Below are positions 6,778 through 50,051 of a stretch of DNA of 64,000 nt, piece after piece (the stretch's first letter is position 1; the number at the start of each line of letters is the position of its first letter). The stretch is taken from contig JAPDFW010000090.1 of the NCBI GenBank assembly GCA_028826165.1, positions 62,001 through 126,000 on the forward strand, read 5' to 3'. This DNA comes from Anaeramoeba ignava BMAN (lineage: Eukaryota > Protista > Anaeramoebae). The notes under the pieces are model-generated. The model worked only from the letters and a program-made list of their open reading frames with translations. It did not search any database and was not told where the DNA came from. A program made the position numbers and the translations under genes.

Positions 6778-8469
6778 TATAATTTAATCTAAATAAATAT
6801 TTAATTTAAAATATTTAATCAATTTAATCAATTTAAATATTAAATTTAAAAATTAATTTCCAAATTTTTTTAATTAATTTAATTAAAAATTTATTTAGGA
6901 AAATATTAAAAATTATTTTAATTAAATTAATTTAAATAAAAATATAATTTAATCTAAATTAAAATTTAATTTAAAATAATTAATCAATTTAATTAATTTA
7001 AATATTAAATTAAAAATTAATTTCCAAATTTTTTAAATTAATTTAATTAAAAATTTACTTGGGAAAATATTAAAAATCATTTTTATTAATTTAATCTAAA
7101 ATAAAAATATAATTTAATCTAAATTAAAATCTAATTTAAAATAATTAATCAATTTAATCAATTTTAAATATTAATTTAAAATTAATTTCCAATTTTTAAA
7201 TTTAATTTAATTAAAAATTTATTTAGGAAAATATTAAAAATTATTTTAATTAGATTAATCTAAATAAAAATATAATTTAATCTAAATTTAAAATCTAATT
7301 TAAAATATTTAATCAATTTAATCAATTTAAATATTAAATTAAAATTAATTTCCAAATAATTTTTAATTAATTTAATTAAAAATTAATTTAGGAAAATATT
7401 AAAAATAATTTTAATTAGATTAATTTAAATAAAAATATAATTTAATCTAAATAAAAATCTAATTTAAAATATTTAATCAATTTAATCAATTTAAATATTA
7501 ATTTAAAATTAATTTCCAATTTTTAAAATTAATTTAATTAAAAATTTATTTAGGAAAATATTAAAAATTATTTTAATTAGATTAATCTAAATAAAAATAT
7601 AATTTAATCTAAATTAAAATCTAATTTAAAAATATTTAATCAATTTAATCAATTTAAATATTAAATTAAAAATTAATTTCCAAATAATTTTATTTAATTT
7701 AATTAAAAATTTATTTAGGAAAATATTAAAAATCATTTTAATTAGATTAATTTAAATAAAAATATAATTTAATCTAAATTAAAATTTAATTTAAAATAAT
7801 TAATCAATTTAATTAATTTAAATATTAAATTAAAAATTAATTTCCAAATTTTTAAATTAATTTAATTAAAAATTTATTTGGGAAAATATTAAAAATCATT
7901 TTTATTAATTTAATCTAAATAAAAATATAATTTAATCTAAATTAAAATTTAATTTAATCAATTTAATCAATTTAATCAATTTAAATATTAAATTAAAAAT
8001 TAATTTCCAAATTTTTAAATTAATTTAATTAAAAATTTATTTAGGAAAATATTAAAAATAATTTTAATTAGATTAATTTAAATAAAAATATAATTTAATC
8101 TAAATTAAAATTTAATTTAAAATAATTTAATCAATTTAATCAATTTAAATATTAATTTAAAATTAATTTCCAAATTTTTAATTAATTAAATTAAAAATTT
8201 ATTTAGGAAAATATTAAAAATAATTTTGGTTAATTTAATTTAAATAAAAATATAATTTAATCTAAATTAAAATTTAATTTAAAATATTTAATCAATTTAA
8301 TCAATTAAAATATTAAATTAAAAATTAATTTCCAAATTTTTTTAATTAATTTAATTAAAAATTTATTTAGGAAATAAATAATTTTGGTTAATTTAATTTA
8401 AATTAAAAATCAATAACAAATGGAAATGATTCATCTTTTTGATAAGTAATTAAATTTAAAAAAAAATTT

Positions 8470-20459: not shown

Positions 20460-21609
20460 TTTCAAAATATTTTTAAATAATAAAATATTTAAATCTAAAA
20501 CAATAAATTATTATTTTAAACATAAAACTAAATATTAAATTATATTTTTAAATTAATTTATAAATTAAATATTAAATTAAATTTATTCTTATTTTTTATA
20601 TTTTTATGTTAAATATTTTTAATAATAAAATATTTAAATCTAAAACATTAAATTATTATTTTAATAATAAAATTAAATATTAAATTATATTTTTAAATTA
20701 ATTTTTAAATTAAATATTAAATTAAACTTATTCTTATTTTTATATTTATATGTTAAATATTTAAATAATAAAATATTTAAATCTAAAACATTAAATTAAT
20801 ATTTTAATAATAAAATTAAATATTAAATTATATTTTTAAATTAATTTATAAATTAAATATTAAATTAAATCTATTTTCATTTTTATATTTATATGTTAAA
20901 TATTTGAATAATAAAATATTTAAATCTAAAACAATAAATTAATATTTTAATAATAAAATTAAATATTAAATTATATTTTTAAATTAATTTATAAATTAAA
21001 TATTAAATTAAATCTATTCTCATTTTTTATATTTATATGTTAAATATTTAAATAATAAAATATTTAAATCTAAAACAATAAATTATTATTTTAATAATGA
21101 AATTAAATATTAAATTATATTTTTAAATTAATTTATAAATTAAATATTAAATTAAATCTATTCTTATTTTTTATATTTTTATGTTAAATATTTAAATAAT
21201 AAAATATTTAAATTTAAAACAATAAATTATTATTTTAATAATAAAATTAAATATTAAATTATATTTTTAAATTAATTTATAAATTAAATATTAAATTAAA
21301 CTTATTCTTATTTTCTTTATTTATATGTTAAATATTTAAATAATAAAATATTTAAATCTAAAACAATAAATTATTATTTTAAACATAAAATTAAATATTA
21401 AATTATATTTTTAAATTAATTTATAAATTAAATATTAAATTAAATTTATTTTTATTTTTTATATTTATATGTTAAATATTTTTAAATAATAAAATATTTA
21501 AATTTAAAACAATAAATTATTATTTTAATAATAGAATTAAATATTAAATTATATTTTTAAATTAATTTATAAATTAAATATTAAATTAAATCTATTCTTA
21601 TTTTCTTTA
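20460..21609. repeat. AT-rich tandem satellite, ~144-bp unit, 8 copies, 3' of RCC1-BTB copy 1
   Basis: The anchor AAATCTAAAACA recurs at 20491, 20636, 20779, 20922, 21066, 21210, 21354 and 21500. Confidence 0.92.
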
Positions 21610-23374
21610 TTAATTTTGATTATTAAATTTGTTAATTAATAAATCAAATAAATTTGGATTTGTTTGATTTATTTGAAAATAATCAATTCCTCTTTCTAAT
21701 TCTTCAATTATTTCTTGTGTAATTTCAATTTCTTCTTTAATTTGATTTGAATAAATCCAATATTCAAATATTTGAAATGATTTATTACTTAATTCACTAT
21801 AATCTGTAACTTTATTAGATTTATCTTCAGTTACAGATAAAAACATTCCTCGATATAATTCACTTCTCATTATTAATATTAATTTAGGAAATTTATATTG
21901 TTTTTCTTTTCTTTCAATAATAAAATCTTTTTCATTTTCATTTTCATTTTCATTTAAATAAATTCTTTTCATTGTTTCTTCAATTTTTTCATTTGAATTT
22001 ATAATTTCTTTAATTTCAGAATATAATTTTGGATTTATTTTGGAATTGTTTGAATAAATCATTTTAAATATTTGATTTGATTCTTTAATTGATTTTGTTG
22101 AAATAATTTCTTTAAGTTTTTCAATTTGATTTTGATTTTGATTTTGATTTAATCTATATTTTAATATTAATTTATGAACTTCAATTATTTCTCCATTTTT
22201 GGTTTTAAATGAAATATCACAAAATTCTTTTCTTTTAAATAATTTTATCAAATCTTCTTCAAGATTGGAAAAAGAAGGAGGAGAATAATAAATAAATGAA
22301 TTTGAATATCCACAAAGAACATGATAATTGTAAATATTTTCATTAAATCTTAATTTAGGAAGTTCAATTTGAATTGGAACTTTTTGATATTTTCTATCTC
22401 CAGTTCCTAATTGACCATATGAATTCCCTCCAAATATAAATAGTTTTCCTTTGGAGGTTAAAATCAAAGTATGAACGCATCCACAAGAAAAATCAAGAAT
22501 ATCATCATTTTCAAATAAAGATGATTTAATTTCAGTAAATTCATAAGTATTGTGTATTTTGCCAAGTCCATTATATTCATAATATCCACATGAATAAAGT
22601 TTTCTTTTTGGATTTTCATTTTCATTTTCATTTTCAATCAACATCAATGAATGAAAAAATCCACATTGAATATCAATTATTTTGCCTTTTGGAATATTTT
22701 GGATTTGTGTTAATTTATGGATTTGTGTTGATCTTCCTAATCCAAGTTGACCATCATAATTATAACCGCATCCAAATAATTCTTGATTTGAATTTAAAAG
22801 AAAAACAGAAAATGAATCATTTCCTGAAAATATTTTAGAAATATTTTTCATCATTAAAATTGGTTTTTCTGTTTTTTCAAGTGTTTCAGGATCAAAACCA
22901 AGTTGACCATAATTATTTGAACCAATTCCATAAGCATTTTGATTTGAAGTTAATAAGTAAATTGAACTTAATCCAGAAACAATATCTTGAATTATTCTAT
23001 CATTTGTATCTTCGAATTAATGATGAAATATTGATAAATTTATTTGAATTAATATCTTTTCCTTTGAGAAATACATTTCCTTCTATTGTTAAAATAGCTT
23101 CATTTTGATAACCAACAGTTACTTTTTGAATATTTTCTTCAATTTGGATTTCTTCAGGATTTGAATCATTTTCTTTTAAATATTCTATTGCTTTTCCGTT
23201 TTTAAAAAGGAAAATTGTTCCAAAATAACCTGATGAAATTTGTTTAATTTGTTTTTCATTTTCATTTTCATTTTCATTTTCAAATTTAAATTGAATTGGT
23301 TTTGTTATTTTATCTGGTTCATTTTTGATAAGTTTTCTTAATTGATTTGAACCAAAAAATAAAATTTCATTCAT
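21610..23374 (-). CDS. RCC1 beta-propeller + tandem BTB protein, copy 1 (1-nt insertion near 23013)
   Basis: RCC1 repeats GxNxxGQLG and CGxxHS; BTB-like FCDISF...VHKLIL and KDFII...PKLILIMRSELYRGMF...WIYS. The start MNEILFFGSNQ aligns with copy 2. Confidence 0.88.
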
Positions 23375-27394: not shown

Positions 27395-28240
27395 TAAAGA
27401 AAATAAGAATAGATTTAATTTAATATTTAATTTATAAATTAATTTAAAAATATAATTTAATATTTAATTTTATTATTAAAATAATAATTTATTGTTTTAG
27501 ATTTAAATATTTTATTAATTAAATATTAAACATATAAATATAAAAAATGAGAATAGATTTAATTTAATATTTAATTTATAAATCAATTTAAAAATATAAT
27601 TTAATATTTAATTTTATTATTAAAACAATAATTTAATGTTTTTAGATTTAAATATTTTATTATTTAAATATTTAACATATAAATATAAAAATAAAAATAT
27701 ATTTAATTTAATATTTAATTTATAAATTAATTTAAAAATATAATCTAATATTTAATTTTATTATTAAAATATTAATTTAATGTTTTAGATTTAAATATTT
27801 TATTATTCAAATATTTAACATATAAATATAAAAATAAGAATAGATTTAATTTAATATTAATTTATAAATTAATTTAAAAATATAATCTAATATTTAATTT
27901 TATTATTAAAATAATAATTTATTGTTTTAGATTTAAATATTTTATTATTTAAATATTTAACATATAAATATAAAAATGAGAATAAATTTAATTTAATATT
28001 TAATTTATAAATTAATTTAAAAATATAATTTAATATTTAATTTTATTATTAAAATAATAATTTAATGTTTTAGATTTTAAATATTTTATTATTTAAATAT
28101 TTAACATATAAATATAAAAATGAAAATAGATTTAATTTAATATTTAATTTATAAATTAATTTAAAAATATAATTTAATATTTAATTTTATGTTTAAAATA
28201 ATAATTTATTGTTTTAGATTTAAATATTTTATTATTTAAA
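27395..28240. repeat. Inverted copy of the ~144-bp satellite, ~6 units, 3' of RCC1-BTB copy 2
   Basis: The reverse-complement anchor TGTTTTAGATTT recurs about every 144 bp. Unique flank homology extends to about 28334, matching about 20371. Confidence 0.9.
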
Positions 28241-30839: not shown

Positions 30840-31575
30840 TTTTAATATATTTTATTATAATTAAAATTGGAATAATAAATAATCAAAAATATTAATATAA
30901 TAAATAAAAATATTATATCAAATTAAATTAAAATAAATTTAAATTTAATTATTATTAAAATTAAATATTTATATTTATTAAAAATTTATTCCATTTTTAT
31001 TATAATTAAAATTGGAATAATAATTGAAAATAATATAATAAATAAAAATATTAAATTAAATTAAAATAAAATAAATTTAAATTAAATTATTATTAAATAT
31101 TATTAAAATTAAATATATATATTTATTAAAATATTTCAATTTTCTTCTCAATTTTATTAAATTATTGGGAATTATTTTATATTATTTTAAATAAATATTA
31201 ATAAAATATAAAATATAATTAATTCTAAATTTAATTATTTAATATTATTTATTCCATTTTTGAAATAAATTAATCAAAAATATTTTATTAATTTTATTAA
31301 ATTATTGGGAATAATTTTATATTATTTTAAATAAAGAAATATTAATAAAATATATAAAATAGAATTAATTTTAAATTTAATTATTTAATATTCTTTATTC
31401 CATTTTTGAAATAAATTAATTAAAATATTTTATTAATTTTATTAAATTATTGAGAATAATTTTATATTATTTTAAATAAAGAAATATTAATAAAATATAT
31501 AAGATATAATTAATTTATAATTTAATTATTTAATATTCTTTATTCCATTTTTGAAATAAATTAATTAAAATATTT
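30840..31575. repeat. Two short AT-rich tandem arrays with ~140-145-bp units
   Basis: TTATTATAATTAAAATTGGAATAATAA at about 30852 and 30997; ATTTTATTAAATTATTG at 31151, 31291 and 31436. Confidence 0.7.
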
Positions 31576-31835
31576 TATAATTGAAAGAAAAGAAAAACAA
31601 TATAAATTTCCTAAATTAATATTAATAATGAGAAGTGAATTATATCGAGGAATGTTTTTATCTGTTACAAATGATAATTCTAATAAATGAATTAAGTAAT
31701 AAATCATTTCAAGTATTTGAATATTGGATTTATTCAAATCAAATCAAAGATGAAATTCAAATTACAAAAGAAATAATTGATGAAATTAAAATAGGAATTG
31801 ATTATTTTCAATTAAATCAAACAAATCCAAATTAA
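31575..31835 (+). pseudogene. 3' fragment of an RCC1-BTB gene (second BTB only, with internal deletion)
   Basis: Near-identical to about 27082-27350 (IERKEKQYKFPKLILIMRSELYRGMFLSVT...WIYSNQIK...IDYFQLNQTNPN). It has no start and carries a frameshifting deletion near 31687. Confidence 0.85.
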
Positions 31836-37219: not shown

Positions 37220-38905
37220 AAATAAATAATAATAAATTAATTAATATTTAAATTATAAATTATTTATTTAATTAATTTTAAATATTATTTTAAATTAATA
37301 TATTATTGATTATTATTGAATATTTTTAATATTTTATTTATTAAATATTTTAATTAAATAAATAATAATAAATTAATTAATATTTAATTAATATTTAAAT
37401 TATAAATTATTTATTTAATTAATTTTAAATATAATTTTAAATTAATATATTATTGATTATTATTAAATATTTTTAATATTTTATTTATTAAATATTTTAA
37501 TTAAATAAATAATAATAAATTAATTAATATTTAATTAATATTTAAATTATAAATTATTTATTTAGTTAATTTTAAATATAATTTTAAATTAATATATTAT
37601 TGATTATTATTAAATATTTTTGATATTTTATTTATTAAATATTTTAATCAAATAAATAGTAAGAAATAAATTAATATTTAATTAATATTTAAATTATAAA
37701 TTATTTATTTAATTAATTTTAAATATTATTTTAAATTAATATATTATTGCTTATTATTTAATATTTAGATATTTTATTTATTAAATATTTTAATTAAATA
37801 AATAATAAGAAATAAATTAATATTTAATTAATATTTAAATTATAAATTATTTATTTAATTAATTTTAAATATAATTTTAAATTAATATATTATTGATTAT
37901 TATTTAATATATTAGATATTTTATTTATTAAATATTTTAATCAAATAAATAATAAGAAATAAATTAATATTTAATTAATATTTAAATTATAAATTATTTA
38001 TTTAGTTAATTTTAAATATAATTTTAAATTAATATATTATTGATTATTATTAAATATTTTTGATATTTTATTTATTAAATATTTTAATTAAATAAATAAT
38101 AAGAAATAAATTAATATTTAATTAATATTTAAATTATAAATTATTTATTTGGTTAATTTTAAATATTATTTTAAATTAATATATAATTGATTATTATTTA
38201 ATATTTAGATATTTTATTTATTAAATATTTTAATTAAATAAATAATAAGAAATTAATTAATATTTAATTAATATTTAAATTATAAATTATTTATTTGGTT
38301 AATTTTAAATATAATTTTAAATTAATATATTATTAATTATTATTAAATATTTTTGATATTTTATTTATTAAATATTTGGTTAATTTTAAATATAATTTTA
38401 AATTAATATATTATTAATTATTATTAAATATTTTTGATATTTTATTTATTAAATATTTTAATTAAATAAATAATAAGAAATAAATTAATATTTAATTAAT
38501 ATTTAAATTATAAATTATTTATTTAATTAATTTTAAATATTATTTTAAATTAATATATTATTGATTATTATTGAATATTTTAGATATTTTATTTATTAAA
38601 TATTTTAATCAAATAAATAATAAGAAATAAATTAATAATTAATTAATATTTAAATTATAAATTAATTATTTAGTTAATTTTAAATATTATTTTAAATTAA
38701 TATATTATTGATTATTATTGAATATTTTTGATATTTTATTTATTAAATATTTTAATCAAATAAATAATAAGAAATTAATTAATATTTAATTAATATTTAA
38801 ATTATAAATTATTTATTTAATTAATTTTAAATATAATTTTAAATTAATATATTATTGATTATTATTTAATATTTTTAATATTTTATTTATTAAATATTTT
38901 AATCA
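37220..38905. repeat. AT-rich tandem satellite, 146-147-bp unit, ~11 copies, directly upstream of H3 variant copy 1
   Basis: The anchor AATTATAAAT recurs at 37251, 37398, 37545, 37692, 37838, 37985, 38132 and 38278 onwards. Confidence 0.93.
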
Positions 38906-38910
38906 AATAA

Positions 38911-39040
38911 AATCAAAACACTATTATCCAATAAATTAAGAGATTTAAAAATAATAAAAATCAAAAATTATTGGATAATATTTGATTAAAAAAAATATAA
39001 AAGGAAAAATAAATTTTTATTTCATTTTTTCATTTTATTT
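38911..39040 (+). promoter_or_regulatory. H3 promoter: inverted CCAAT pair, TATA-like box, TCATTTT initiator-like motifs
   Basis: TATTATCCAATAA (38922-38934) and its reverse complement TTATTGGATAATA (38968-38980); TATAAAAG near 38996; TCATTTT at about 39022 and 39030. All are conserved in copy 2 (46254-46375). Confidence 0.65.
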
Positions 39041-39086: not shown

Positions 39087-39659
39087 ATGGCAAGAACAAA
39101 ATCAACTGGAAAAAAATCAACAAGTGGAAAAAGACCACATAGAGGATCAAAAGGTCAAAAAGGTCAAAAAACTGCACAAAAAGGACAAAAAGCAAGAAAA
39201 GGACAAAAAGCACAAAAAGGTCAAAAAGGTCAAAAAACTGGACAAAAAGCACAAAAAGGACAAAAAACAGCACAAAAAGCAAGAAAAGGACAAAAAGGAC
39301 AAAAAGGTCATAAAACAGCACAAAAAGGACAAAAAGGAAAGAAAAGTTCAGTTGCAGCAAAAAGACAAAGAAGAGTTAAACCAGGAACAGTTGCAACAAG
39401 AGAAATTAAAAAATATCAAAAATCAACTGAATTATTATTAAGAAAATTACCATTTCAAAGATTAGTTAGAGATATTGCACATGAACATAAATCAGATTTA
39501 AGATTTCAAAGTGCAGCTATTGCAGCTTTACAAGAAGCAACTGAAGCATTTATTGTTGAAGTTTTAGAAGATACAAATTTATGTGCACTTCATGCTAAAA
39601 GAGTTACAATTATGAAAAATGATCTTGATTTAGTTAAAAAAATTCGTTCAAATCTTTAA
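39087..39659 (+). CDS. Histone H3 variant with repeat-expanded N-terminal tail (190 aa), copy 1
   Basis: MARTK start; histone fold [34 protein letters not shown]...[19 protein letters not shown]...[15 protein letters not shown]. Confidence 0.96.
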
Positions 39660-39751: not shown

Positions 39752-41127
39752 TTAATCTTTTAAAAGATCATTCAAAAGATCAATTTCTCGATTTAATTTT
39801 TCATCATTAATAATTGAAATTTCAGTTTTCAAATATTCCAAAAATTTTTGACCTTTTTCTTTATCATTAACTTTATGAAATTTCTTAACTAAATCAACCA
39901 AACGAATTAATAAAATAGCTTTTCTAATACTTTTATCTTCAAAAAATTCATTTTGATTTTGATTCAATTCAGGAAAAATAACATTATTAACTTCTTTAAA
40001 ATCATTTCCATATTTATCCTTATAAGTAACAACAATATTCAAAGGAATTCCATCAGCAACAGATTTATCCATTTTAAGCAATAAAACAGCACCTTGAGCC
40101 TCACCATTCTCATTTACATCACTTGGCATTGCTGTTGAAATCTCAGCAACTGTTGTATCCTTCTTTGTTTCTGAATCAGGTGATCCATAAATTGATTGAA
40201 TTTTTGCTCCTTCAACTTTAACTTCAATATCAAAACAAATAGGTGTCATAATATAATCAAATTCGGTATCCATTCTTCTTTTGAATTCTGAAGATGAATT
40301 AACTGAATAATAAATAGCTCCTTTTGTTTTTGTGATGATATCAATTAATTCTGTATTAAAATCAACTCCAATCCCAATAAAAGTTGTGTAAATCTTTTTT
40401 TCAGCTGATTTTTTTGTAAGTGAAAATAATCCATCACTTCTTGTTTCTCCAGTTGTTGGATGAGCATCTGTTAAATAAAGGATTCTGTTTTCATATTCTT
40501 TCATTTCATCTCCTTTGAATTTCTTCAAGTGATTTTCAATCATTCTTGATCCTTCAATAAATCCTTCTTCAAGATTAGTTCCTCCTCTTGTGTCTAATTT
40601 ATTCATTGCTTTTTTGAATTTTTCCGTATCAATTTCTCCAAATTTTTGGAAAGGAATCAAAACTTCAGCATCATCATCAAAAATAACAATTCCCAAATAA
40701 TCATCTTCTTTTAAATGTTCAGTTAATCCAATTATAGTTCTTTTTGCAACTTCTAATTTACTTGAAATGTTTTCATTTGTTTTCCATTCACCAGTAAAAG
40801 ACATACTCATTGAACCTGAAATATCCAAAACAATCACACAATTAATTAAAGGTCTTCCAAATTTCTTTATTCCTTCTCCATCATATTTGGATTTCATCAT
40901 AAGTGATAAATAATATTCTTTTTCTTTTGTTTCTAAATTTTCTGTTATTGCACAAAAGGGTTGAACTGCCATTAATTTCTCTTCTTCTAGTTTTCCTACA
41001 TTGAAATAATATTCTGAAAATAATCCATGATAAGTAATTGAATTTTCAACTACTGTTTGTTTTTTTGAACATTTATTCTGAAATTTGTTATATCTTGAGC
41101 TCCTCCAAATGAATTTTCATCCATCAT
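39752..41127 (-). CDS. von Willebrand factor A (MIDAS) domain protein (frameshift in A-run near 41062)
   Basis: VIVLDISGSMS (DxSxS), GGTNL, ILYLTDA, TTFIGIGVDFN. The N-terminus GGAQDITNFR...SITYHGLFSEYYF lies upstream of the tracked ORF. Confidence 0.9.
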
Positions 41128-41288
41128 TACAATTTTTTTTTTATTTAATCCAAATGAGAAAAATGAAAAAAATGTGATTGATCCAAATTTTCTTTTTTTT
41201 TTCTTAAAGTGAGAACTAAAAGAAAAAAAATTGAAAACAAAAATTTCATTTTTTCTTCTCTTTTCCATTTATTTCTATTTTTCATATA

Positions 41289-43709
41289 ATGAAACCTCTT
41301 ATTAAAAAAAACAATAACAACAACAATTTCCAAAACTTATATCAGTTCAATTCAGAAGAAATGGACGATTTTTTATTAAAATCTGCTTCACATGATCTTT
41401 TCACAATTTATTCAACTCAGAAAAAATTTTCAGATTTTACAATTTATTGTGGCAAAGAAAAAACACCAATTAATTGCCATAAAATTATTTTGAATTCAAG
41501 ATCCTATTTTTTTCATGCATTAACAAGTCAAGAAGAAATCAATGATATTCATTTTCTTGATTTTGAGTATAACGTTGTTGAACCAATAATCAAGTATCTT
41601 TATAAAGGCAAAATTGAAATTAAAGAAGAGAATTTAGAAAAATCTTTTGAATTTGCTGATAAAATTCGCTTGGCAAAATTGAAAGTTAAAATTGAAAAAG
41701 AAATTGAGAAAAGGATCGATCAAACAAATATGATTTTTGTGTTTTATCGAGCAAAAGAAATTAAATCAGCTCATCTTTCTTCAGTTTGTCAGGAAATGAT
41801 TTTGAAAAATATTTCAAGTCTTCTCCAACAAAATCAAATTGCTGCTCTCAACCAGAACGCATTTTTAAATCTTCTTGAATTATTAATTTCGAATTTACAA
41901 TGGAAGAAATCAGAAGTAATTAGAGATGTTATAATTCAATGGGTAAAGAACAACCAACTCAAAAATCAAGAATTTTTTACAAATGAAATACAAATGAATG
42001 ATGATAAATTTAAAACCAAAAAAATGGTGTTTGATATACTAATTAAACTTCAGCAAATGCAAGCAATTGAAGAAAGTCAAATTCAACAACTCACAAAACA
42101 TCGAATTTTTCCTCTTGAAATTTTTACTGATTTGATCAATCTGAAAATGGTTCAATTCAATCAATTTTTTCAGGCAATGGAAAGGGAGTATCAAGAAAAG
42201 AAACAAAGAGAGATTGAGTATAACCAAAATATCAACATTTTGGAAGAAAATTACTCAGAACAGCAAATTATTCAACAAGATTATCAAAATTATCAAAACT
42301 CTGAAAATCAACAAATTATTCAACAAGATTATCAAAACTATCAAAACTCTGAAAATCAACAAATTATTCAACAAGATTATCAAAATTATCAAAACTCTGA
42401 AAATCAACAAATACAAGAAATTATCCCAAAAGAAGAAAATGTAGCTCAAAATCTACTTGCAAATTTCAGAAACAAGAAACTTCAAAATATTCAAGGTTAT
42501 CCAAAAAAAAAATATAAATATAAATATATATATATATATTATATACTTTCGGTTCGAAAAATTAAATCTTATTTTATCCCAAATTTATTTTGTTCTTATT
42601 TTCAATAGATCAAGATATGAACCCACACGAGATTGTTGGAATTCAAACTACAATTGATTTGATGAATATTTTTCCTTCTAATCCAGATATTCAAGAACAT
42701 GCATGCTTCATTTTGCATTATTTTTCATTTGAAAATGATGGTAAGATAATTGAGTAATTGATTGAAAAAACAAAATTCAAAAAATAAAAAATAAAAAGAA
42801 AAACAGAATGAAATTAGAAAATTCAAGGGAATTGAATCGATTATTCAAGCAATGATTCATTTTCCAAACAACTTACAAATTCAATCAAATTCTTGTTTGG
42901 TTTTAAGATCTCTTTCTGAAAATGAGAGTAATTAAATTAAATTAAATTAAATTCAAAAAATTCAAAAATTCAAAAAAAAAAAACAAAAGAAAATCAATTG
43001 GAAATTAGGAAATTGAGAGGAATTGAATTTATTCTAAAAGCAATGAACAATTTCCCAACTAATCCTTTTATTCAAATTCAAGGATGTGGAGCTTTACAAA
43101 ATATTTCTGTTAATCGACGTAAAAAACAAACAAAAAAACAAAATTAAATTGAAAATCCAAATTTTGAATTTAAATAGAAAACAAAATTGAAATTCGAAAT
43201 CAAAATGGAATTGAGACAATTATTAATGCAATGAGATATTTTCCAAATAATGAAGATGTTCAAATCCAAGGTTGTTGGAGTTTAGCGAATTTATCCTTAA
43301 ACAAAAGTATGAATAATTTCCATCAAAAACAAAATTAAATTGAAAATCCAAATTTTGAATTAAATAGAAAACAAAATTGAAATTCGAAATCAAAATGGAA
43401 TTGAAACAATTATTAATGCAATGAGATATTTTCCAAATAATGAAGATGTTCAAGAAAATGGATGTTGGAGTTTAAAAAATCTTGTTTTAAATGAAGGTAA
43501 TAAGCAAAATTTAAATATAATCAAATGAATTGAAAATCAAAAAAATCCAATTTAATTTTCCTTAATTTTTTAAATTAGAAAATAGAAAATTAATCCAGAA
43601 ATTGGATATTAAAGTATTGATTCAAACAGCAATGAGAAAGTTTTCAAGCAATGATTATATCCAGAAAAAAGCTAAAACTCTTCTTTTGGAATTACAGAAT
43701 GAAAATTAA
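41289..43709 (+). CDS. BTB + armadillo-repeat protein, 7 exons
   Basis: BTB FSDFTIYC...INCHKIILNSRSYFF. Exons are 41289-42495, 42609-42740, 42799-42927, 42990-43118, 43178-43306, 43368-43496 and 43579-43709, each 3' exon encoding one ARM-like repeat (GIE.II.AM..FP.N..IQ..GC..L.NL). Confidence 0.9.
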
Positions 43710-43809
43710 AGAGAAATGAATGGGAAAAAAATAATATTTTTTTTGATTAATTTTAACAAAAAAAATCAAAAGAGAAATCTTTAATAAAATTAAGAATAAA
43801 ATCCATTTT

Positions 43810-46240
43810 TATTTTAAATATTATTTTAAATTAATATATTATTAATTATTTTAGATATTTTATTTATTAAATATTTTAATTAAATAAATAATAAGAAATA
43901 AATTAATATTTAATTAATATTTAAATTATAAATTATTTATTTTATTAATTTTAAATATTATTTTAAATTAATATATTATTTATTATTATTGAATATTTTA
44001 GATATTTTATTTATTAAATATTTTAATCAAATAAATAATAAGAAATTAATTAATAATTAATTAATATTTAAATTATAAATTATTTATTTGGTTAATTTTA
44101 AATATTATTTTAAATTAATATATAATTGATTATTATTGAATATTTTTGATATTTTATTTATTAAATATTTTAATCAAATAAATAATAAGAAATAAATTAA
44201 TATTTAATTAATATTTAAATTATAAATTATTTATTTTATTAATTTTAAATATTATTTTAAATTAATATATTATTGATTATTATTAAATATTTTAGATATT
44301 TTATTTATTAAATATTTTAATTAAATAAATAATAAGAAATAAATTAATATTTAATTAATATTTAAATTATAAATTATTTATTTAATTAATTTTAAATATA
44401 TTATTTTAAATTAATATATTATTAATTATTATTGAATATTTTAGATATTTTATTTATTAAATATTTTAATTAAATAAATAATAAGAAATAAATTAATATT
44501 AAATTAATATTTAAATTATAAATTATTTATTTGGTTAATTTTAAATATTATTTTAAATTAATATATTATTAATTATTATTGAATATTTTAGATATTTTAT
44601 TTATTAAATATTTTAATTAAATAAATAATAATAAATAAATTAATATTTAATTAATATTTAAATTATAAATTATTTATTTGGTTAATTTTAAATAATATTT
44701 TAAATTAATATATTATTGATTATTATTAAATATTTTTGATATTTTATTTATTAAATATTTTAATTAAATAAATAATAATAAATTAATTAATATTTAATTA
44801 ATATTTAAATTATAAATTATTTATTTAATTAATTTTAAATATTATTTTAAATTAATATATTATTGATTATTATTAAATATTTTAGATATTTTATTTATTA
44901 AATATTTTAATTAAATAAATAATAAGGAATTAATTAATATTTAATTAATATTTAAATTATAAATTATTTATTTAATTAATTTTAAATATTATTTTAAATT
45001 AATATATTATTGATTATTATTGAATATTTTAGATATTTTATTTATTAAATATTTTAATTAAATAAATAATAAGAAATTAATTAATATTTAATTAATATTT
45101 AAATTATAAATTATTTATTTAATTAATTTTAAATATTATTTTAAATTAATATATTATTGATTATTATTGAATATTTTAGATATTTTATTTATTAAATATT
45201 TTAATTAAATAAATAATAAGAAATTAATTAATATTTAATTAATATTTAAATTATAAATTATTTATTTAATTAATTTTAAATATTATTTTAAATTAATATA
45301 TTATTAATTATTATTGAATATTTTTGATATTTTATTTATTAAATATTTTAATTAAATAAATAATAAGAAATAAATTAATATTTAATTAATATTTAAATTA
45401 TAAATTATTTATTTAATTAATTTTAAATATTATTTTAAATTAATATATAATTAATTATTATTGAATATTTTAGATATTTTATTTATTAAATATTTTAATT
45501 AAATAAATAATAAGAAATAAATTAATATTTAATTAATATTTAAATTATAAATTATTTATTTAATTAATTTTAAATTAATTTTAAATTAATATATTATTGA
45601 TTATTATTAAATATTTTTGATATTTTATTTATTAAATATTTTAATTAAATAAATAATAATAAATTAATTAATATTTAATTAATATTTAAATTATAAATTA
45701 TTTATTTAGTTAATTTTAAATATTATTTTAAATTAATATATTATTGATTATTATTTAAATATTTTTAGATATTTTATTTATTAAATATTTTAATCAAATA
45801 AATAATAAGGAATTAATTAATATTTAATTAATATTTAAATTATAAATTATTTATTTAATTAATTTTAAATATTATTTTAAATTAATATATTATTGATTAT
45901 TATTAAATATTTTTGATATTTTATTTATTAAATATTTTAATTAAATAAATAATAAGAAATAAATTAATATTTAATTAATATTTAAATTATAAATTATTTA
46001 TTTAATTAATTTTAAATATTATTTTAAATTAATATATTATTGATTATTATTTAATATTTTAGATATTTTATTTATTAAATATTTTAATTAAATAAATAAT
46101 AAGAAATAAATTAATATTTAATTAATATTTAAATTATAAATTATTTATTTAGTTAATTTTAAATATTATTTTAAATTAATATATTATTAATTATTATTGA
46201 ATATTTTTGATATTTTATTTATTAAATATTTTAATTAAAT
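43810..46240. repeat. Second array of the 146-147-bp satellite, ~16 copies, upstream of H3 variant copy 2
   Basis: Same unit and orientation as 37220-38905. Confidence 0.93.
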
Positions 46241-46424
46241 AAAATCAAAACACTATTATCCAATAAATTAAGAGATTTAAAAATAATAAAAATCAAAAAT
46301 TATTGGATAATATTTGATTAAAAAAAAATATAAAAAGGAAAAAATAAATTTTTTATTTCATTTTTTCATTTTTTATTTTATTTTCAAATTTATTTTTTAT
46401 TAATTAATTAATTTTTAAAAAAAA

Positions 46425-46997
46425 ATGGCAAGAACAAAATCAACTGGAAAAAAATCAACAAGTGGAAAAAGACCACATAGAGGATCAAAAGGTCAAAAAG
46501 GTCAAAAAACAGCACAAAAAGGACAAAAAGCAAGAAAAGGACAAAAAGCACAAAAAGGTCAAAAAGGTCAAAAAACTGGACAAAAAGCACAAAAAGGACA
46601 AAAAACAGCACAAAAAGCAAGAAAAGGACAAAAAGGACAAAAAGGTCATAAAACAGCACAAAAAGGACAAAAAGGAAAGAAAAGTTCAGTTGCAGCAAAA
46701 AGACAAAGAAGAGTTAAACCAGGAACAGTTGCAACAAGAGAAATTAAAAAATATCAAAAATCAACTGAATTATTATTAAGAAAATTACCATTTCAAAGAT
46801 TAGTAAGAGATATTGCACATGAACATAAATCAGATTTAAGATTTCAAAGTGCAGCTATTGCAGCTTTACAAGAAGCAACTGAAGCATTTATTGTTGAAGT
46901 TTTAGAAGATACTAATTTATGTGCACTTCATGCTAAAAGAGTTACAATTATGAAAAATGATCTTGATTTAGTTAAAAAAATTCGTTCAAATCTTTAA
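46425..46997 (+). CDS. Histone H3 variant with repeat-expanded tail, copy 2 (identical protein)
   Basis: Protein is identical to copy 1; the DNA differences I found are synonymous (ACT/ACA, GTT/GTA, ACA/ACT). Confidence 0.96.
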
Positions 46998-47074
46998 ATT
47001 TAATTTTTTTTAATTTTATTTTTCTTTTTTAATTTGAAATAAAAATTCAAAATTTAAAATTGTTTTATTATTTT

Positions 47075-50051
47075 TTAATTAATTCTTGTTGATAATCTTG
47101 TTGCTTGTTTAATTATTGAAGGTTCATTTGAATAATTTTGGAAAATAAAATCAAGAATTTCTTTTAATTGTTGATTTTTTAATTGTTCAATATTTTCTAT
47201 TTAAAAATTAAAAATTAAAAATTAAAATTAAAATTAAAAATAAAAATTAAAATTAAAAAATACCTTCAATAGAAGCAATATTTGCTAAAGCTCCACAAGC
47301 ATATTTTAAAACTTTTTCATTATTTTTATGATTAATCATTGAATTTAAAATTAACTTAATTCCTTGATTTTGTGCAATAATTCTTTTATTTTCTTCATTA
47401 ACAGCTAAATTCCATAATGATCCACATGCATTAGCTTGTAATTCTCCATTTTTAGGATGAAATTTCATTGATTCCAAAATAGATTGAATTCCATTATGTT
47501 CAACAATAATATTCCTATTACGTTCAGTTACTTCAAGAACCCATAAAGCTGCACATGAATAAGTTTGAAGAAATGAATTTTTTCTGAAATTTTCCATTGT
47601 GTTTAAAATTAATAAAATCCCATTTAAATTTGCAATTATTTGTCTGTTTTCTGTTGAATATTGTGATATTTCCCATAATGTATGAATTGCAAATGATTGA
47701 ATTTGTGGATTTTGTTGGTTCATTTTCATTGCTTCTAAAATGATTTGAATTCCTTTTTGATCTGCAATTTTTGGTTTATTATCACTTCCTCTTGAAATAA
47801 TTTCAATTGTTGATAAAACACTTGGTAAAGTATTCAAAGGAAACATTCTAATTGCTCGAAATAATTCACTTAATAATTCTTCAGCTAATGGAATTTTAAT
47901 ATTCTTTCGATTTGAATATTCATCAACAAATTTCTCAATAATTGATAATTTTGTTTCCCATAAAAGTCTTGATTTCATAGCTTCGGAAAGAACACTTAAA
48001 TGTTTTGAAACATCATTTTCTGTAAATTGTTGATTGATTTGTGCTAATAAAATAAATGGAAGTTGAACCGAATAAGAAATCATTCTTGATATTTTGTTTT
48101 CTACATTTCCAAAATGAATTCTTCCATCATCAACATAGTAAAATCTTTGTAATAAGATACTTATTAATTTTCTTCCTGAATGTGCAATTTTTGTATCAAC
48201 ATTAACTTGTGAAAAACATGAAACAAAAAGTAATTCTTTTGAGAAAATATCACTTGTAATTTTTGATATTGTTGGAAAACATGCAAATATTAATGCAATT
48301 TTATGAAGAATTGCTCTTATTTTCTGTTCTTCTGTTTGAATCAAGTTTTTTTGATTTAAAATTATTGGAACACATTTTTTAAGAAGGATATTTGCACATA
48401 AAAGAAGTTCATCTTCATCTCTGGTTGATAAAAACAAGTGATTATAAATTACGTTTACAAAATGTTCACAAAATGAAGGTGTAATATCTCGATTTTCATT
48501 AAATTGATCAATCATTCCTTCATAATATTCATCTGCTTTTTCTATTGGAATACCTAATTTTTTTAAAAATTCATTTTTAAAAATTCATTTTGAAAATTAA
48601 AATTAAAATTATAATTTATAATTTACCATAATCAAAATATTGTTCAACTTGATAATAACTTTTTTGAGAAACAAGAACTTGAATAAAACGATCAATTAAA
48701 TCAGGATTAAAATCATTAACAAGTTTTAATTTAGTCATTAATTGAGGATTATCAACAGGAAAAACTTTTAAGAATTCAGGTGCGTTTTCAAACAATGAAA
48801 TAACAATTTTTGGAAGATCTGAATGAAGTAAATAAAGAATTAATTTGTATTTTTTTTTATCATTTAAATTTGAAAGTGAATCATTAAATGTTTTAGATCC
48901 AATTCCATTCATTTGTTTCTCAAGAAAATTTCCCATTAATGTTTGAGATTCTTGTTTAATTGTAATGTTAGTTTCATGTGGAAGAAAACTAACAAATGAA
49001 ATTATTGAATCAATTTGTTCATTTACATTTTTCTTAATAAGATTTTTAAAAAACTAATTTTCAAATTAAAATTCATTTTGAAATTAAAATTCATTTTGAA
49101 ATTAAAATTCATTTTGAAATTAAAATTCATTTTCAAATTAAAATTCATTTTGAAATTAAAATTCATTTTGAAATTAAAATTCATTTTGAAATTAAAATTA
49201 ATTTGAAATTAAAATTCATTTTGAAATTAAAATTAAAATTAAAATTAAAATTAAAATTAAAATTAAAATTAAAATTAAAATTAAAATTAATATTAAAATT
49301 CATTTTAAAATTAAAATTCATTTTCAAATTAAAATTCATTTTGAAATTAAAATTCATTTTAAAATTAAAATTCATTTTGAAATTAAAATTCATTTTAAAA
49401 TTAAAATTAAAATTAAAATTAAAATTAAAATTCATTTTGAAATTAAAATTAAAATTAAAATTAAAATTAAAATTCATTTATAAAATTAAAATTCATTTTG
49501 AAATTAAAATTCATTTTGAAATTAAAATTCATTTTGAAATTAAAATTCATTTTGAAATTAAAATTAAAATTAAAATTCATTTTGAAATTAAAATTAAAAT
49601 TAAAATTCATTTTGAAATTAAAATTCATTTTCAAATTAAAATTCATTTTGAAATTAAAATTAATTTTGAAATTAAAATTAAAATTAAAATTCATTTTGAA
49701 ATTAAAATTAAAATTCATTTTGAAATTAAAAAGATTTTAATTTGTTTTTGTTTTTGTTTTTGTTTTTGCTTTTTTCGCTTTTAATAAAAAAAAATTTACT
49801 TGATTTGCTTCATTTATAAGAAATTGAGTAACTTGTTGTTGAATTTTTAAATTAAGAAAAGTGGTTGATTGGTCAATTAATTCATTTGTTTCTGGATTAA
49901 TCCATTGAGTTTTTTGTAAAGTGCTTCTGTCAAATGTTTCTCCAGTTTGTAAAGTAATTGGTTCTAAAAAAATATGATTTGTTGTTGGATCAATTAAAGT
50001 AACTGGTATTTTGACATTTAATTCTGATAAAAGATAATTTGAAATTGACAT
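47075..50051 (-). CDS. U-box + armadillo-repeat E3 ubiquitin ligase-like protein, multi-exon
   Basis: U-box IPVTLIDPTTNHIFLEPITLQTGETFDRSTL...NPETNE...NLKIQQQV. ARM repeats GIQIILEAM...IQSFAIHTLWEI and GIQSILESM...LQANACGSLWNL. Confidence 0.85.
49045..49735. repeat. Intronic 18-bp (AAATTAAAATTCATTTTG) plus 6-bp (AAAATT) repeats
   Basis: Fills the first intron of the U-box-ARM gene. Confidence 0.88.

Follow-up and report, generated by a model that had tools for sequence, protein, structure and literature searches.

A repeat-built N-terminal tail in the probable bulk histone H3 of the protist Anaeramoeba ignava

Histone H3's N-terminal tail is among the most conserved of eukaryotic sequences. 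Histone tails can also carry added short repeats: the SPKK repeats of sea-urchin sperm H2B and H1 bind extra A+T-rich linker DNA. The last eukaryotic common ancestor is inferred to have had methylation of H3 at K9 and K27 (10.1101/2021.11.30.470311), and the metamonad Trichomonas vaginalis has an H3 that keeps the K4, K9, K14, K27 and K36 motifs, along with HP1-like proteins with chromoshadow domains (PMC2939574). The precedents that we found for a lost or lengthened tail are minor variants or belong to parasites or nucleomorphs. Stylonychia H3.7 and H3.8, 20 kDa in size and deviating mostly in the N-terminus, are restricted to particular nuclei or stages and occur beside six 15-kDa H3s, the micronucleus showing a 20-kDa band and no 15-kDa H3 (PMC3918171). 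Nucleomorph H3s, each the sole H3 of a tiny endosymbiont genome, have lost K9 and K27 or their contexts by deletion, those of chlorarachniophytes being without residues 10-38 (PMC4822330).

The gene described here lies in a window of 64,000 nucleotides from the free-living anaerobic amoeba Anaeramoeba ignava BMAN (assembly GCA_028826165.1, contig JAPDFW010000090.1, positions 62,001 to 126,000), and coordinates below are those of the window unless a contig is named (Table 1). Its product, which we call type A, matches Pfam PF00125 (Histone) with an E value of 3e-34, has a mature mass of 20.95 kDa and carries a net charge of +40, versus +19 for canonical H3. It is thus similar in size to the long-tailed Stylonychia variants, to which no sequence relationship was found, and differs from them in that no short (15-kDa-type) H3 was found in the assembly beside the long-tailed form. 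With the nucleomorph proteins it shares the loss of K9/K27 contexts in the only H3s detected, but here the tail has expanded rather than shrunk, and in a free-living organism with a 43-Mb genome.

Table 1. Coordinates of the type A H3 genes, their parts and their upstream elements in the window
Feature	Positions	Strand	Remarks
Histone H3 type A, copy 1	39087-39659	+	uninterrupted 190-codon ORF, no intron
N-terminal segment, conserved	39087-39149	+	A1 R2 T3 K4, T6, K9 S10 T11, G13 K14, P16 in canonical register
Repeat insert	39150-39332	+	61 aa, mature residues 21-81; replaces canonical residues ~19-26
Proximal tail	39333-39380	+	second GKKS, K36-equivalent lysine; K37R, Y41V
Histone fold from P43	39381-39656	+	keeps K56, K64, Q68, K79, F84, T107, C110, H113, K115, T118; K122 lost
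Histone H3 type A, copy 2	46425-46997	+	identical protein; insert 46488-46670
Promoter element, upstream copy of inverted pair, H3 copy 1	38922-38935	-	CCAAT core
Promoter element, downstream copy, H3 copy 1	38966-38980	+	CCAAT core
Inverted element pair, H3 copy 2	46254-46312		46254-46267 and 46298-46312
Tandem array, 147-bp period, upstream of copy 1	37220-38911		~97% A+T; ends ~175 nt upstream of the ATG
Tandem array, 147-bp period, upstream of copy 2	43809-46243		16.5 copies, 96% matches

An earlier note on this DNA, made from the letters of the window, had described an H3-like start followed by about 20 lysine-led tail units in a protein some 54 residues longer than canonical H3. The description is borne out: we count 19 units, and the tail has 97 residues versus 42 in canonical H3 (+55), which with a C-terminus shorter by one residue gives a net gain of 54. 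The units are tri- and tetrapeptides (KGQ ten times, KTAQ three times, KAR and KAQ twice each, KTGQ and KGH once each), the insert holds no acidic, aromatic or proline residue, and its DNA has periods of 9, 30 and 39 nt (Tandem Repeats Finder), a pattern expected from slippage. In a single-sequence structure model, pLDDT is below 50 across most of residues 23-85, so that the insert is predicted to be unstructured. A shadow ORF in the +1 frame (39124-39441) was set aside as a by-product of the repeat. Residues 1-17, which are identical in the second H3 type of this genome (type B, see below), carry the substitutions Q5S, A7G and R8K; A7 and R8 are the residues required by HP1 chromodomains and by SUV39/G9a enzymes. 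The same note held that GKKS had replaced the ARKS contexts of K9 and K27, and as to the contexts this is correct, GKKS being present at K9 and at K85 and ARKS nowhere in the tail. K9 itself, however, stays in exact register, and the second GKKS, which lies 13 residues from P43 versus 16 for K27 in canonical H3 and is missing in type B, is not firmly K27. K36 is in register when counted back from P43, and from P43 on the fold aligns ungapped to H3.3, with at most 76% identity to any non-Anaeramoeba H3 retrieved; about 20 fold positions of the A. ignava H3 are rare among 221 retrieved H3 folds. Given the 97-residue tail, GKKS at K9 and the loss of ARKS, type A is not a typical canonical H3.

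The inventory of H3 genes that the note had proposed was carried out on the whole assembly (42.8 Mb, 147 contigs), with four queries: the fold, Pfam PF00125, canonical H3.3 at E ≤ 1, and a DNA pattern written degenerately to match the canonical N-terminus with two mismatches. It returned six H3 genes, every one of them repeat-tailed, and none of these queries found a canonical-tail H3; the N-terminus pattern gave one poly-A chance match versus five in the reversed control. Type A accounts for five of the six (two in the window, three on contig C64), a number comparable to those of H2A, H2B and H4, with four genes each, and the sixth is type B on contig C20, a protein of 184 aa with 16 units and a fold 87% identical to that of type A. 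The two copies with identical protein, synonymous differences and a conserved promoter noticed earlier are correct for the window, where copies 1 and 2 differ by three synonymous changes and have near-identical promoters, though the genome total is larger. Both copies are part of a duplicated block (39752-48515) that also includes a vWA gene and one with ARM repeats, and this block recurs, rearranged, on contig C64 at 95-98% identity.

A 15-nt element with a CCAAT core is found 80-170 nt upstream of all 17 genes in question (five type A H3 and four each of H2A, H2B and H4), as an inverted pair in type A H3, H2B and H4 and as a direct pair in H2A, one H2A having a single exact copy. Genome-wide the element has 38 matches, 33 of them at these 17 core-histone genes, with no pair elsewhere and no match in the reversed control; the remaining five, on contigs C13, C29, C63, C104 and C127, are single. 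It is missing at type B, at H1 and at an H3-like gene on contig C58, and type B, having neither the element nor an upstream array of the kind discussed below, fits regulation independent of the core-histone set. Because all H3s are repeat-tailed and type A shares the core-histone element while B is without it, type A is most likely the bulk H3, an assignment we consider very probable, and B its replacement variant. Type A would then be regulated jointly with the other octamer histones and probably expressed in S phase, with the 15-nt element as a candidate histone-regulon (S-phase) element. The initial picture of a variant standing beside a normal H3 is thereby overturned. The arrangement is like that of the canonical H3/H3.3 pair, in which multi-copy genes share a promoter element with the core histones next to one separately regulated paralog, and the proteins are alike in a fold with K56, K64, K79, C110 and H113 and in having T3/K4, K9/S10/T11, K14 and K36 in register. 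Unlike that pair, the A. ignava proteins have lost both ARKS motifs, have repeats in place of the K18/K23/K27 region and are identical to each other at residues 87-90. The highly conserved H3 tail thus appears to have been rebuilt in the ordinary H3 rather than in a rare variant. This state is derived, since the related metamonads T. vaginalis and Blattamonas keep a normal tail, the Blattamonas H3 (P0373) combining an ordinary fold with a tail of normal length and ARKS/T motifs.

The insert is unchanged in protein among the intact copies. Across the five type A copies there are five variable sites that are synonymous and none that is non-synonymous (P ~6e-4 by site counts), five being few and not independent events, since the copies either arose by recent segmental duplication or are alleles, their flanks being 95-98% identical; for the tail alone the figures are three and none (P ~0.012), and the upstream comparison gives nine substitution columns in 168. 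The deeper comparison is that between A and B, whose folds differ at 29 synonymous codons over ~59 synonymous sites, about half, and which nevertheless share unit types, with GC of 0.5 at codon positions 1-2, at similar length. The repeat therefore is old, predates the A/B split and was retained while its units turned over.

We then consider the machinery with which such a tail would work. Four SET genes were found in the genome search, comprising SET1, one short SETMAR/KMT1-like gene and two SMYD-like genes, together with nine bromodomain matches, which point to acetyl-lysine readers, and chromodomains are confined to three CHD remodellers, each with a double domain. An exon-by-exon genome search, which yields lower bounds and had no eukaryotic positive control for the three domains named next, gave no match to chromoshadow, SUZ12 VEFS or AWS domains and detected SET1 but not HP1, SUZ12, EZH or Set2. 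The H4 encoded by each of its four genes is divergent: it keeps K5 and K16, is without H18 and has E at position 20, where canonical H4 has K. The linker histone, whose presence the note had suggested checking, is there: a spliced model, searched and translated exon by exon, gives one winged-helix H1 on contig C81 (E 5e-12) with a single 183-nt intron and a C-terminus in which a basic part of 39 residues precedes one of 52 with a net charge of -7, an acidic SESESK-type repeat forming the end. Among the other histones, an H2A on contig C83 has a C-terminal extension ending in SQVY and is H2A.X-like, and the Pfam search for histones showed no H2A.Z. In a CHD1-like helicase on contig C71 a long, intein-like insertion follows directly on the GK of the Walker A motif, which agrees with a report of many inteins in Anaeramoeba (PMC10710043).

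Three readings would deny that type A is an ordinary, bulk, long-tailed H3. The public gene model M0811_07055 gives a protein of 161 aa, obtained by cutting a GT..AG segment (CDS 77-163), and would make part of the insert an intron. That model lies on contig C64, where one type A copy (C64:1430442-1431010) has two single-A deletions in A runs, an assembly error or a pseudogene, which an 85-nt intron would rescue, and this frameshifted copy is probably the source of the 161-aa protein. The putative intron begins with GTC, has 33% G+C and is in frame in the four intact copies, whereas the H1 intron begins with GTA and has 5% G+C; we therefore read it as a gene-prediction artefact. Introns of A. 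ignava BMAN are on average 91.86% A+T in a genome of 80.65% A+T (10.1101/2023.03.03.530753). No intron is annotated in type B, a protein of 161 aa would still have a non-canonical repeat tail, and we regard the intron as extremely improbable. No more credible is the reading of type A as the centromeric H3 or, in cyst chromatin, as a K/Q substrate of transglutaminase, though a long divergent N-terminal tail is typical of cenH3, the rest of the genome yielded no clear cenH3, and K and Q do alternate in the insert. Type A has none of the tested cenH3 fold features: as the note had argued, Q68 is kept and loop 1 is of normal length without insertion, and F84 and T107 are kept too, whereas a cenH3-like metagenome control (L105) has A, W and A at Q68, F84 and T107 and a longer loop 1. 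In a fold tree that is poorly resolved elsewhere and holds few cenH3 references, a 98/99 branch separates A and B from all other H3s and from the cenH3-like sequences. The core-histone promoter on five copies argues against both the centromeric and the cross-linking proposal, and the transglutaminase idea, for which nothing here speaks beyond that alternation, fits poorly with proteins that, as the only H3s, must package the whole genome. The H3-like gene on contig C58 (L007:1000-2082) encodes 361 aa with an H3-like fold (33% identity, W at 84), an acidic/basic low-complexity N-terminus and an apparent second histone fold, its Atlas matches all being below 0.9, and is a candidate cenH3 or histone doublet. 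The third reading, a stage-specific variant whose canonical partner is absent from the assembly, has the Stylonychia precedent behind it; histone loci can collapse in an assembly of 147 contigs, and five single promoter elements lie away from the known histone genes. It is very unlikely all the same, given that the inventory searches came back blank while H2A, H2B and H4 were all recovered as dispersed genes, that paired elements occur only at known histone genes, and that A and B already make up a bulk/replacement-like pair.

What a tail of this kind in the bulk H3 would do is a separate matter, on which the note had named a linker-histone-like DNA-condensing tail among three possible functions. 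We put the chances at about even that the long tail acts mainly as an extra DNA-binding polycation, the most plausible of the three, though not as a stand-in for H1: the H1 gene is present, so the tail fills no gap. Loss of ARKS-reading repressive machinery may have lifted constraint on residues ~17-30, slippage of 9-12-nt units may then have expanded the mid-tail, and selection may have kept the product as an unstructured DNA-binding polycation. With ~20 more lysines in each H3, some +42 charge per nucleosome, the tail would attach to DNA at the entry/exit points and adjoining them, and would make nucleosomes more stable or more compact in a genome of 80% A+T whose intergenic arrays exceed 95% A+T. 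It would thereby supplement H1, which has a short C-terminal tail that is acidic in part, and acetylation in bulk, by neutralising charge, would exert control in place of a residue-specific code. The SPKK tails offer a model in that they too are short basic repeats, and differ in being sperm-specific and in belonging to H2B and H1, where phosphorylation at SP switches them, the insert having neither S nor P. Against the polycation stand the presence of H1, the existence of a SETMAR/KMT1-like enzyme and the fact that coding sequences are full of slippage repeats genome-wide. Nor does A+T content alone demand expansion, as Plasmodium, also very A+T-rich, keeps a canonical H3 tail. Slippage repeats in many A. 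ignava proteins are indeed what a tolerated, near-neutral expansion would lead one to expect, with the readers of K18-K27 lost, the units drifting by slippage and selection acting only for a basic and disordered segment; A has 19 units and B 16, in a different order, and the N-terminal tails of H2A (151 aa) and H2B (155 aa) are likewise long and divergent, and partly acidic. We nonetheless hold this unlikely, for both old paralogs retain ~50-55 added residues built of shared unit types, the type A copies show no change of amino acid, and the G, A, Q, H and T codons of the insert run counter to the A+T bias. Less probable still is a multiplied modification platform, which the note had also proposed: repeats resembling the RNA polymerase II CTD in use, with KTAQ and KAR units methylated, acetylated or phosphorylated and read multivalently in place of the K9/K27 code. 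ARK motifs at K37 and K66 of type A and K73 of type B, the SETMAR/KMT1-like and SMYD-like enzymes and the bromodomain matches would suit it, which keeps the proposal possible but weak, seeing that both type A motifs are followed by G and not S, that the KGQ majority resembles no canonical site, that no HP1/Polycomb-type chromodomain was found as reader and that the units are not fixed between the paralogs.

No other H3 with such a tail was found in protein, 1.84-billion-representative, metagenome, viral or Atlas searches, and a search for contigs encoding the protein gave no match. The homologue lists, crowded as they were with fused and ordinary H3 models, did not include an H3 of A. flamelloides, which is no evidence either way. 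A viral origin was rejected, the best fold identity on a viral contig being 68%. In an unrelated metagenomic H3 (P0164) the corresponding stretch of the tail contains a few KGM/KGL tripeptides in a row, a small convergent case. Five sequencing runs hold 56-68% of the words searched for, none of them labelled RNA; one of these (X5), labelled as a second organism, holds 56%, and another run of that organism holds none, pointing to a mislabel, a mixture or a close relative. The A. ignava genome paper (10.1101/2023.03.03.530753) makes no mention of histones, a full-text literature search found no description of a long-tailed Anaeramoeba H3, and what we newly connect with the lack of a canonical H3 are the type B gene, the H4 and the arrays. 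With such tails on its only H3s, A. ignava, free-living and culturable, is a natural experiment on whether tail length and spacing serve nucleosome physics or only readers; it further yields a testable recombinant-nucleosome system, the 15-nt histone-regulon element and the correction of a public gene model.

The A+T-rich arrays upstream of the two H3 copies have counterparts across the core-histone set: such arrays adjoin 14 of the 17 element-bearing genes, with periods of 144-154, ending 150-250 nt upstream of the ATG. We rejected them as a histone-specific feature. Four further sites in the window (6778-8374, 20472-21611, 27400-28240 and 31150-31582) have similar arrays, as does the neighbourhood of SET1, so that they are a general feature of the genome; all six in the window are intergenic, more than 94% A+T and of 144-164-bp period. 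A link between the arrays and nucleosome spacing is a hypothesis. It enters a wider proposal, which we consider doubtful, that the whole repressive methyl code is gone (H3K9 and H3K27 contexts, H4K20, HP1 and PRC2) and that the doubled tail compacts closely spaced nucleosomes, whose short repeat length would be recorded in genome-wide 144-168-bp A+T arrays. If true, a free-living eukaryote would be packing and silencing its DNA without a canonical H3 tail, on a re-engineered nucleosome. Array units of H3, H2A and most H2B genes resemble each other above shuffled controls, and those of H4 do not.
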